Shown here: positions 3,787 to 45,121 of the stretch, in pieces
Position numbering within the stretch: position 1 is the first letter of the stretch
Layout: each line of letters opens with the position of its first letter
From: Octopus sinensis
Lineage: Eukaryota
DNA length: 64,000 bases
Assembly (NCBI RefSeq): GCF_006345805.1
Contig: NC_043002.1
Location: 110,112,001-110,176,000, forward strand
Direction: 5' to 3'
The notes under the pieces: generated by a model
Databases searched by the model: none
Told to the model about the DNA's origin: nothing
What the model saw: the letters and a program-made list of their open reading frames with translations, nothing else
Position numbers and translations under genes: made by a program

Positions 3787-3804
3787 CTTTACAGATTCCC
3801 ACAT
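3787..3804 (-). CDS. Gene 1 exon 9: 18-nt micro-exon (D)VGICK, phase 1-1
   Basis: tattatattttccag ATGTGGGAATCTGTAAAG gtaaga; supplies the Cys expected after CCPGF and joins in frame to DINEC. Confidence 0.7.
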
Positions 3805-3911
3805 CTGGAAAATATAATATTATTATTATTATTACTACTAATACTATTATTATTATTATTATTATTATTATTATTATTATTAGTAGTAGTAGTAGTAGTA
3901 GTAGTAGTAGG

Positions 3912-4531
3912 GGGACAAGCTGACAGAATCGTTAGTATGCTGAACGAAATGCTTAACAGTATTTTGTCCATTGTTATGGTATGAGTTCAAACTCTGCTGA
4001 GGTCAACTTGACTTTGCACCCTTTCGGGGTTGATAAATAAAGTACTAGTTGAGTACTAGGGGCCGATGTAATTGAATAGTCCCTGACCCCTAATTTCGGG
4101 CCTTTTGCCTATTGTAGAAAGGACTGTCTGCTGGCATTTCGTTCTGAGTTCAAATTCCAGCGAGGTTGACTTTGCCTTTCATTCTTTTGGGGTTGATTAA
4201 ATATGTACCAGTTATGCACTGGGGTCGATGTAATCGACTTAATCCTTGTTTGTCTGTCCTTGTTTGTCCCCTCTACATTTAGATCCTTGTGGGCAATAAA
4301 GGAATGAATTATTATCATTATTATTAAGGCAGCGAGCTGGCAGAATTGTTAGCATGCCGAGGGAAATGTTCAGTGGCATTTCATTTGTCCTTATAGTCTA
4401 AGTTCAAATCCTGCTATGGTCAACTTTGCCTTTAGCCTTTCGGGGTTGATGAAATAAAGTACCACTTGCGTACTGATGCTGATTTAGTCAACTAGCTCCC
4501 TCTCCACAATTTCAAGCCTTCTACCTATAGA
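3912..4531 (+). mobile_element. Cluster of three diverged SINE family C copies
   Basis: GAGTTCAAAT B-box and gactttgcctttcatcctttcggggt core recur at ~3985, ~4147 and ~4400. Confidence 0.75.
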
Positions 4532-4555
4532 AAATGGAATATTATTATTATTATT

Positions 4556-5537
4556 GTCTTTGCACAGCTTCTAATGCTGGAGATATACTATGGTGTCAAC
4601 TGTTCACTACCAGTGAACTAAGGAAACACCACTTATTTTTCGGGCACCTTCTGGAGTATTCGAGCAGTTCCAAGCAGTGCTGTTTTCTGCAAGTGCTCCA
4701 CCTTTATTGCAGCCCCTATTTGTTCCATATACTTCTCAAGATTTTTACTCACTGTTCCCAAGGCTCTGACAATTATTGGTACCACTATCACCTTTTCATC
4801 GACCACAACTGCTTAACTTCCCAAGCTAATCTGTCATATCTATCTACTTTTCTTTCTTTCTTATCACATACCTTGTTGTCAGCTGGGCATGCTATATCTA
4901 TGATCCAGCATAGTTTGCTTTCTTTCTCAATTAAGACTATGTCTAGCTTCCTATTCTCTATCTCATGGTCGCACTGAATCATAAAATCCCACAGGATCTT
5001 TGCATTATCATTTTTGATGATGCCTTCAGGTTTGTGGTCATACCAATTTTTTGCTCTGTCAAGTCCATACATGTTGCAAAGTGTCCAATAGACAAGCCTT
5101 GCTATATTGTCGTGGCATCTCTTATACTCCTTCTGGGCTAGTGGCATACATTGACTGGAAATATACCATATGGTTTTACCATTTTGTCCACAGATTCTGC
5201 ACTTATCACTTTCTGATGTGCTGTCTATTCTGTATTTTATGTAGTTTGTTCTTAGTGCTTGCTCAAGGTCAGCGTGGATTAGAGCCTCTGTTTCCAGTTT
5301 TAAATCACTTTTAGTCATCCATTGCCATCCTTTTTCTCTTTCTGTCTTATCTTCAACATCTCTATGAAATTGTCCATGCATTCTTTTCTTTACCCACCTA
5401 TTTTCAGTTTCATTTGTTTTCAATTGCTTGTACAGTGCTTTATCTTTGCAAACTTTCATCCTGCACAAGTCTGATCGTCTTACTTCTAATAATAGTGGTT
5501 TTTACATACCATGCTATGTTGTTTCCTTCTGCTCTAG
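4556..5537 (-). mobile_element. R4/Dong-clade non-LTR retrotransposon 3' part (restriction-like endonuclease)
   Basis: CRICG..ETI..I.S.C..LAQKEYKRCHDNIA, LWDFMIQCDH, K.DIV.IEK, IIDIACP motifs; (TAA)n tail. Confidence 0.85.
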
Positions 5538-5563
5538 TGAATAACATAAATTCATACAAACCC

Positions 5564-5815
5564 TTGAGAAGCAGTTGGATGGAACTTACACTCGCCTCCT
5601 TATGAGAGCTCAAAATCTCTCATGGAAGCGTCATCCAACCAAAGTACAAATATATGGGAAATTACCACCTGTATCATCTCTTGTGAAAAGTAGAAGAGTC
5701 CAGTTTGCTGGACATTGTTGTAGAGCTGAAAACGAGGTAATTTCTACTCTTCTCCTCTGGAAGCCATCTACTCGCAATACCAGAAGGTGCACACTCTCCT
5801 ATTCTGATGTAATCA
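5564..5815 (+). mobile_element. RTE family 2 3' fragment
   Basis: DGTYTRLLMRAQNLSWKRHPTK..FAGHCCRAENE, matches 29254-30288. Confidence 0.85.
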
Positions 5816-42416: not shown

Positions 42417-42614
42417 TTTTTTTCACTTCTCTCCAACACACAGTCTTTCTTCTCTCAGACCCTCAACCTCTATTATAAATACATACTCCCTCCCCCTCTC
42501 TCTCTCTCTCTCTTCTATCAGCCTCTCAATATACAGACACACTTTCTTTCTTTACTTTTTTACTATTCTCCATCACCCCATTAAATTAAAAAAGAGAGAA
42601 ATAAAATATCCATA

Positions 42615-44165
42615 AAAATGTCCAGAAACTGGTGGAGCATGGAATTAGCATTGTTTTTGACAGCCTGACACTGTGCAGAAGGAGATAACCCAAATAACAT
42701 AATCACAGCTGTGCTGAAGAGCAATGGTTACACAAGAACTTTAGCACAGATAGAATGAAAGAAGCAGGAGTTTCCATGCTCCTATGCTCTCAACCGATCC
42801 CACATCAGCACTCTTGATCCCATCCTTGATAATGAACACAGCAAAGATGATAAGGATGGAGGCACAGATGAAGACGAAAGATGTTACCCCCACTTAGTAG
42901 ACACTCAAGAAAACAAAGAAGATTCAAGCAAGAAACCTACCCAGAAAGTAAACCCAAATGCAAGTGCCCCTACCACCATCAAAGCGAAAAACCATGTAGG
43001 TGAAAGAGCCAAGAAAGAACAACTAAAAAGAGCAGAAACAAAAGATAAAACAGCCAAAGAAAGAAGCGAACCTAACTGCCCATATAACAAAAAAGGATTA
43101 AAAGAGACAGCACACACGAATATGCAAATTTTACTTGAAAGGTGTCTGCTGGCATGGAGAAGGGGTGCAAGCTGTCATTTTGCCCATCAAAGACCCCACC
43201 ACACAAACACGAAACAGGGTGGAAACCACCTGCCAAAAGGAAAGGACTACGCACCACCTGCCCCAAACGGAGGTATGCAGATGTAGTGCATGCTACAAAC
43301 CAGTCTTATCAACATGCTGAAAGGGCAGCTGTTGAACAACAATCTTTTTGTGCATGGCACAAAAGATTGTACAGTAGCTGACCTGGCTACTTCAAACTCA
43401 CAGATGGGACTATCCCCACTACACAAGACTACCACAGCAAATAGACCCAAGGCGGGCACCACTGGCAACAACACAGCCATCACATCGGTGCTCTTACTGA
43501 ACATCAGAGGACTGCTAACACTCAGTAACAGGACAAAAATCCCTTTCTTGAGAGACCTTGTTGCATACAATCAAGCCTTATGTATAGAAAGAAAGGAGTC
43601 ATGGAGGAGTTGCTATGTACATCCATGAGGACTTCACACCCCAGGTCCTTTTGCCACACTCAAATTCAGTATGTGACACACTAATTGTACATATAAGACT
43701 CGATGTAGTTATATGTGCTACATATCGCCCTCCAGATGCCCCAAGCCATGTAGGCAAGTTTGAAGACCTCCTTACAAAAATAGAAGGAATTCTAGTTACA
43801 TTAGAGCAACACATAAGTGTACTTCTTATGGGAGACATCAATCTGCCCGATGTCAGATGGCCTGAGGGCCTTTCTCTTCCAGGAATGGCACGATGTGAAC
43901 AAGGATAGGTGAAGTCCCTCCTGAACCTCATCAACACTTTGTACATGGAACAAATAGTACTCCAGCCAACCAGGGCATGTAACATACTGGATCTCTGCTT
44001 CCTAAATAATATGAATCTCATCCATAATGTGAAAGTGAACTGACGCTACTCTCGGATCACAACATGGTAGAGCTCACCATGTACAAATCAAAGGAAACCA
44101 TGGACATGCAGCCTACAAGTGACTCTCAAAATCTTTCCAGCTTGAAATTCCATAAAGCAAACTAG
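42615..44165 (+). mobile_element. CR1/L2-like LINE 5' relic (Cys/His ORF1-like region plus APE endonuclease)
   Basis: LLLNIRGL, ATYRPP, LMGDINLP, PTRACNILDLCF, LSDHNMV APE motifs. Confidence 0.8.
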
Positions 44166-44712
44166 AAACATAACTTAGCGGTTCGGCAAAAGAGACCAAT
44201 AGAATAAGCTTGCAAAGAGGGTCATTTTGTTTTGACTAAAGGCAGTGCTCCAGCATGACCACAGTCAATTGACTGAGACAAATAAAAGAATATATATATA
44301 TATAATACACACACACATATTTGTATTATGTATATCTATCAATCTATCTAACCATCTATCTACATACATACATTCATGCATGCATGCATACATACATACA
44401 TACATACATACATACATACATACATACATACATACATACATACACACACAGATAGATAATATGATGACTATGGATGACCGCTTTAAAACCTCCAGCTTCT
44501 ATACCCAGAATATAAAATTACATTTATGCCAATAATTATTGATGCTCTTGGTTTTATGAGTAAATGCCTAAGTGACAATCTGGATAAGCTGGGGTTTCCA
44601 GGAAAAGAAATCAACTAGCTAACCCTTGTAACCAGAACACTAAAAATATGCAAGACTTTTCTCAAGTTCAACATGTGAATTTCAAATAATTAAAAGTAGA
44701 AGAGAATATATA

Positions 44713-44942
44713 TTTCTTTACTACCCACAAGGGGCTAAACACAGAGGGGACAAACAAGGACAGACAAACGGATTAAGTCGATTACATCGATCCCAGTGCG
44801 TAACTGGTACTTAATTTATCGACCCCGAAAGGATGAAAGGCAAAGTCGACCTCGGCGGAATTTGAACTCAGAACGTAGCGACAGACGAAATACGGCTACG
44901 CATTTCGCCCGGCGTGCTAACGTTTCTGCCAGCTCACCGCCT
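44713..44942 (-). mobile_element. SINE family C
   Basis: Near-consensus copy. Confidence 0.9.
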
Positions 44943-45106
44943 TTCGTAGAAGAGAATATATGTGTGCATGCATGCGTGTGTGTGTGTGTGTGTGCATGTG
45001 CATACATGCATTCATAAGTGTGTGAGTGTGTCTATGTAGGTGTAGGGAGAGAGAAAAAATCATAGAAGCAAAAGAAAAATTAAAGTAATAAAACTGAACA
45101 ACTTAC

Positions 45107-45121
45107 GAATTGGCTGCTCCA
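45107..45121 (-). CDS. Gene 1 exon 3: 15-nt micro-exon (I)GAAN(S), phase 2-2
   Basis: tttcaagcttttcag TGGAGCAGCCAATTC gtaagt; encodes small residues typical of a signal-peptide c-region. Confidence 0.5.

Follow-up and report, generated by a model that had tools for sequence, protein, structure and literature searches.

A stretch of 64,000 nucleotides (nt) of the Octopus sinensis genome (NC_043002.1, positions 110,112,001 to 110,176,000; hereafter the window) contains, on its minus strand, an 18-nt segment encoding (D)VGICK that appears to be a genuine coding micro-exon in a gene for a secreted protein with epidermal growth factor (EGF)-like domains. Three micro-exons had been proposed in this gene by an earlier note made from the letters of the window: GAAN (45107-45121), RGWL (15636-15650) and VGICK (3787-3804), each named here for the residues it would encode. 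An AG and a GTAAG are indeed present at all three positions on the minus strand, and the lengths of 15, 15 and 18 nt are all phase-symmetric (2-2, 2-2 and 1-1). Only the last of the three would be a true micro-exon. It is quite probable, in our estimation, that the 18-nt segment is such an exon, that GAAN is the tail of exon 1 and that RGWL is a look-alike within an intron. The 18-nt exon is already present in public annotation and so is not new.

The three candidates all appear to lie in the 5' half of one octopus gene. Calcium-binding EGF (cbEGF) exons of 120 nt and phase 1-1 came to light on the minus strand when stop-free frames were scanned for Cys-rich segments. Used as homology queries, they matched the Octopus vulgaris protein CAI9723784.1, named 'epidermal growth factor-like domains 6 isoform X1', whose genomic source is OX597819.1 of assembly GCA_951406725.2. 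A second homology search returned the Octopus bimaculoides orthologue, XP_052824434.1 (LOC128248071). The O. vulgaris protein, which begins MSQYNFVFLVLTLCFKLFSGAANSKCSYTC…CPQTFTKYYLKKQKCVKCCPGFTEIDVGICKDINEC…, was placed on the window by tblastn, and the splice sites were then read from the sequence. Residues 1-122 of CAI9723784.1 are those of the spliced coding sequence (CDS) of the window, bar one substitution, Y2S, with S in O. vulgaris and Y in the window. The gene model of the earlier note appears to have been largely right in that it reproduces the annotated O. vulgaris protein.

Six exons are placed on the minus strand of the window in this way. Exon 1 (45177..45107) provides 71 nt of CDS, comprising the ATG, the signal peptide and GAAN (MYQYNFVFLVLTLCFKLFSGAAN + TC), and ends in phase 2. 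Exon 2 (20789..20694; 96 nt, phase 2-2) encodes (S)KCSYTCTKRLTKLGVKIMRCPHNAFMVCPQT + TT; it is a 100% tblastn match to CAI9723784.1 and is bounded by ttttcag| and |gtaagc. Exon 3 (6652..6591; 62 nt, phase 2-1) encodes (F)TKYYLKKQKCVKCCPGFTEI + G, is likewise a 100% match to CAI9723784.1, has splice sites tttcaag| and |gtaagt, and is conserved at both the O. bimaculoides and the O. vulgaris loci. The 18-nt exon, exon 4 (3804..3787; phase 1-1), is followed by two exons of 120 nt with phase 1-1, both found by tblastn match: the first cbEGF exon, exon 5 (2895..2776; 40 residues), and the second, exon 6 (922..803). Introns 1 to 5 measure 24,317, 14,041, 2,786, 891 and 1,853 nt. The window is collinear with the O. 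vulgaris locus at 93-98% identity and with the O. bimaculoides locus at 85-94%, and all three candidates are single copy and syntenic in both; a repeat or transposon origin for them was ruled out by this single-copy, syntenic state.

The product is predicted to be a secreted Cys-rich protein of matrix type, in which a signal peptide is followed by a lineage-restricted N-terminal module of eight Cys and by tandem cbEGF domains. On the first EGF exon, the Pfam model EGF_CA (PF07645) scores 34.1 bits against a cut-off of 27, which identifies it as a calcium-binding EGF repeat, and FXa_inhibition (PF14670) scores 37.5 bits against a cut-off of 33.4. The N-terminal module had no Pfam match in any of four splice versions (with or without RGWLC, with or without VGICK). 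An EMI domain was considered for its CCPGF...C pattern and rejected, as there was no match to PF07546 at E up to 10 in the four versions. In a full HMMER search of 1.84 billion representative proteins with XP_052824434.1 as the query, no relative of the eight-Cys module was found outside Octopus; the sole matches were the two octopus proteins and, through 'TKYY', a bacterial repeat protein that is a spurious hit.

The case for the 18-nt exon is built on its splice sites, on its presence in both orthologous proteins and on the Cys count of the N-terminal module. On the minus strand it reads ttccag|ATGTGGGAATCTGTAAAG|gtaaga at 3804..3787. It is an internal exon of no more than 27 nt, the size limit for a micro-exon, with AG and GT sites and set between introns of 2,786 and 891 nt, and its donor, AAG|GTAAGA, is near consensus. 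The residues DVGICK are present in CAI9723784.1 (EIDVGICKDINEC), and XP_052824434.1 has DLGICK (VDLGICK...) in the same place. At the O. vulgaris locus the exon sequence is identical. At the O. bimaculoides locus the same ttttccag| acceptor and |gtaagatt donor bound an exon of 45 nt, ATTTGGGAATCTGTAAATATAAAGACTGTTTTTTACATTGCAAAG, which encodes DLGICKYKDCFLHCK and is an exact match to XP_052824434.1. The 18-nt and 45-nt exons differ by one substitution (V/L) and by an in-frame indel of 27 nt with TGTAAA on one side and TGCAAA on the other. A deletion across short repeats in the lineage of O. vulgaris may account for it, which would have taken the exon from 45 to 18 nt. The mature N-terminal module has eight Cys with the 18-nt exon and seven without it, so the statement in the earlier note that skipping would drop one Cys is borne out; the residue concerned is the eighth and last Cys of the module, directly ahead of the first cbEGF domain. 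We propose that the exon is constitutive and included by default, that DVGICK completes the Cys complement of the N-terminal module and that its Cys takes part in a disulfide; the exon has the same phase, 1-1, as the EGF exons after it. Just upstream of the exon, a long (TAA)n/(TAC)n microsatellite (3808-3900, minus strand) abuts the acceptor region, and the microsatellite varies in length among the three genomes.

GAAN is no separate micro-exon, being the last 15 nt, the 3' end, of exon 1. The candidate reads ttttcag|TGGAGCAGCCAATTC|gtaagt at 45121..45107 on the minus strand with phases 2-2, and its 15 nt continue, unbroken and in frame, the reading that opens with the ATG at 45177. The codons ahead of it, ATG TAT CAG … AAG CTT TTC AG|T, encode the signal peptide MYQYNFVFLVLTLCFKLFS, and there is a stop codon eight codons upstream of this ATG. 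What had been taken for a pyrimidine-rich acceptor is thus coding sequence: the supposed tract is made of the Leu/Phe-rich signal-peptide codons, the AG is the first two letters of the Ser codon AGT, and there is a further AG 6 nt upstream. Exon 1 matches residues 1-24 of CAI9723784.1 and residues 1-23 of XP_052824434.1, with …FSGAAN… unbroken in both proteins, and the exon together with its donor, gtaagt at 45106, is conserved at the O. bimaculoides and O. vulgaris loci. As part of the exon that carries the ATG, GAAN cannot be left out as a cassette, and the suggestion that its skipping would alter signal-peptide cleavage therefore falls. Nor are the candidates each isolated in kilobase-scale introns as was described, since GAAN adjoins the ATG exon and the intron downstream of the 18-nt exon measures 891 nt.

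RGWL, which lies deep in intron 2, most likely owes its AG...GTAAG pattern to chance and is a decoy, or pseudo-exon. It reads gtgcag|AAGAGGCTGGTTATG|gtaagc at 15650..15636 on the minus strand, within the 14,041-nt intron, with a length of 15 nt and phases 2-2. Could it be a real micro-exon nonetheless, one spliced in rarely or only in certain tissues and overlooked by both annotation pipelines? The splicing arithmetic of the earlier note holds: with TT at the end of exon 2 and T at the start of exon 3, inclusion gives TT|A AGA GGC TGG TTA TG|T, or L-R-G-W-L-C, and skipping turns the TG|T Cys into TT|T, Phe. The segment is also frame-open in the right phase, has a GTAAGC donor and is identical in O. 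vulgaris, where the region is 99% identical throughout and the identity is hence uninformative. Against this, both CAI9723784.1 and XP_052824434.1 read T-F-TKYY, the direct join of exons 2 and 3, with RGWL absent, and no protein with RGWLC was recovered by a homology search whose query alignment carried it, which is a weak negative because this word-indexed search also missed CAI9723784.1. The O. bimaculoides counterpart is AAAAGGCTGTCCATG|gtatgc, with four mismatches in the 15 nt (R>K, W>C, L>P) and GTATGC as the donor; at the divergence of about 9% found in 300 nt of the flanks, the probability of at least four such changes is 0.04. Inclusion of RGWLC would furthermore give the N-terminal module nine Cys. 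We consider a real RGWL exon very improbable.

The AG...GTAAG pattern by itself is not above chance. In the window, an AG and a GTAAG separated by 12-27 nt in a multiple of three occur 21 times on the minus strand and 26 times on the plus strand, and with a spacing of 15 or 18 nt they occur 7 and 11 times, respectively. No gene was found on the plus strand of the window, so its count approximates the background rate. Intron 2 alone has six frame-open look-alikes, five besides RGWL, and intron 3 has another at 6280..6266.

Is the 18-nt exon itself an artefact of a protein-to-genome aligner or gene predictor, with real mRNAs joining exon 3 directly to the first EGF exon? The O. vulgaris annotation drew on Iso-Seq, RNA-seq, Spaln protein alignments and the ab initio predictors Augustus and GeneMark, merged via EVM and PASA (PMC10700109). 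The protein alignments and predictors could in principle place an exon of this kind, and the Iso-Seq and RNA-seq inputs make transcript support for it plausible. We think an artefact quite unlikely. Two independent pipelines (EVM/PASA at CNAG, and the RefSeq model behind the XP_ accession) arrived in two species at an exon with the same acceptor and donor, an even Cys count requires the exon, and the indel between species, at 27 nt, is in frame. A rather better prospect, still an improbable one, is that the exon is real and is a regulated cassette, skipped in some tissues and possibly under eMIC/SRRM control. Its symmetric phase means that skipping keeps the frame, giving TEI-DINEC; micro-exons as a class are often regulated (PMC8797185); and the lengths of 18 and 45 nt in orthologous exons indicate a segment that tolerates change. 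Set against these points, the exon is included in both annotated models, and skipping it leaves an odd count of seven Cys in a secreted module, which favours constitutive inclusion. No isoform that skips it, and no other isoform, was found in the protein collection, either with a query alignment containing RGWLC and the skipped-VGICK version or with CAI9723784.1, a weak negative in that the first of these searches missed CAI9723784.1. The label 'isoform X1' on that entry is a name transferred by Blast2GO and no evidence of isoforms (PMC10700109).

The known cis code points the same way. Exons that depend on eMIC have long AG-exclusion zones and pyrimidine tracts that are long and rich in UCUC, with a UGC close by the 3' splice site (PMC8797185). 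Around the 18-nt exon, no UGC lies within 60 nt of the acceptor, the AG-exclusion zone spans just 28 nt, and there is no UCUC tract. It resembles the eMIC-dependent (SRRM3/4, Srrm234) neural micro-exons in size class (27 nt or less) and in frame preservation, and differs from them in lacking these signals and in its host gene, whose product is a secreted EGF protein rich in Cys. Neither regulated skipping nor SRRM/eMIC control of this exon finds positive support here. RGWL has a TGC at -5 and a longer exclusion zone of 53 nt, but no TCTC. A literature search did not find the combination of micro-exons, eMIC and octopus covered. One further idea is that RGWL, the 18-nt exon or both are tissue-restricted cassettes that toggle the Cys parity of the octopus extracellular module among seven, eight and nine, for which we see hardly any likelihood. 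If true, such splicing would let the protein alternate between a closed form with all its Cys in disulfides and a free-thiol form able to link covalently to partners, and regulated micro-exon use in cephalopods would extend to secreted matrix proteins.

Several observations weigh against our preferred reading, in which the 18-nt exon is a constitutive micro-exon, GAAN the end of exon 1 and RGWL a look-alike. CAI9723784.1 and XP_052824434.1, the two models that support it, are both automated predictions. Conservation says little in either direction, since the exons of this gene change at much the same pace as its introns: exon 2 has 7 of 96 nt changed relative to the O. bimaculoides orthologue, and its flanks differ by about 7-9%. 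The proposed check for conserved islands of 15-18 nt was for this reason uninformative when applied to the two other octopus loci. The RGWL acceptor is decent, with 70% pyrimidines, its 53-nt AG-exclusion zone and a UGC at -5, and is paired with a GTAAG donor. AlphaFold2, run on CAI9723784.1 aligned with XP_052824434.1 (a two-sequence alignment), gave a mean predicted local distance difference test (pLDDT) score of 40.8, and a prediction this poor (pLDDT of about 41) cannot display a disulfide made by the micro-exon Cys.

The result matters little beyond correct annotation. It does indicate that AG...GTAAG look-alikes read by eye in the long, repeat-rich introns of octopus are mostly decoys, and that a hydrophobic coding stretch such as a signal peptide is able to mimic a polypyrimidine tract. 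The 18-nt exon may also serve as a small case of in-frame exon shrinkage, from 45 to 18 nt, between sister species in a fast-evolving, lineage-restricted secreted EGF protein.

The same gene was compared with its two orthologues and with related proteins. The O. vulgaris protein shares the exon order of the window and the segments SGAANS, QTFTKYY and EIDVGICKDINEC. Its residues 123-202 form two near-identical EGF repeats (…QLLNNKQCS and …QLVNNKQCS), compared with one in the window, from 2776-2895 to 803-922, a difference that reflects either copy-number variation or collapse of a tandem EGF exon. Set against exon 5 of the window, the last EGF-like exon of CAI9723784.1 (about 77839-78180 of the O. 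vulgaris locus) shows a gap of 1 nt, and the protein ends in a frameshifted EGF reading (…CKTLKEATNVSVDLAINLTM…); the terminal repeat may be decaying, or the assembly may be in error here. XP_052824434.1 of O. bimaculoides shares the signal peptide with GAAN, exons 2 and 3, and an exon at the splice sites of the 18-nt exon; it differs in the 45-nt length of that exon (DLGICKYKDCFLHCK) and in ending with a short non-EGF terminal exon. Within intron 1, at 35635-35679 of the O. bimaculoides locus, it has one more exon (45 nt, phase 2-2; LYTPHHQRFDPFWKYG), for which neither the window nor O. vulgaris shows a detectable counterpart. Proteins with cbEGF arrays, of the SCUBE, MEGF6, fibulin and hemicentin type, have the same 40-residue modules (D-x-N-E-C ... 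NGGC ... C-x-C-x-x-G-Y), which the octopus gene encodes with one 120-nt, phase 1-1 exon each and which score above the cut-offs of EGF_CA and FXa_inhibition. The octopus protein differs from them in its orphan eight-Cys N-terminal module, and no CUB or other partner domains were seen in it.

Two more 120-nt, phase 1-1 cbEGF exons are present on the minus strand at 58996-59115 and 56882-57001, 12-14 kb upstream of the ATG, and probably belong to a tandem paralogue. The second has D-K-N-E-Y in place of D-x-N-E-C and so only five Cys. The EGF exon at 59115..58996 has its 3' half, plus some 30 nt from the start of its intron (|gtaagt), perfectly copied at about 55990-56085 of the minus strand, over some 95 nt in all. 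An A-run precedes the copy, which arose by partial duplication not long ago or else is a captured fragment. The window as a whole is repeat-rich and has transposon-like open frames, among them LINE (long interspersed nuclear element) or reverse-transcriptase frames such as those at 29254-30288 and 50042-50800, and an assembly gap of 100 N lies at 52245-52344. The introns are filled by several dispersed repeat families of about 400 nt that resemble short interspersed nuclear elements (SINEs), with many copies of 'MSSNARGTNTDTQTHTH…'; SINE-like copies lie on the minus strand at 1466-1660, 12098-12253, 15191-15373 and 28159-28341.

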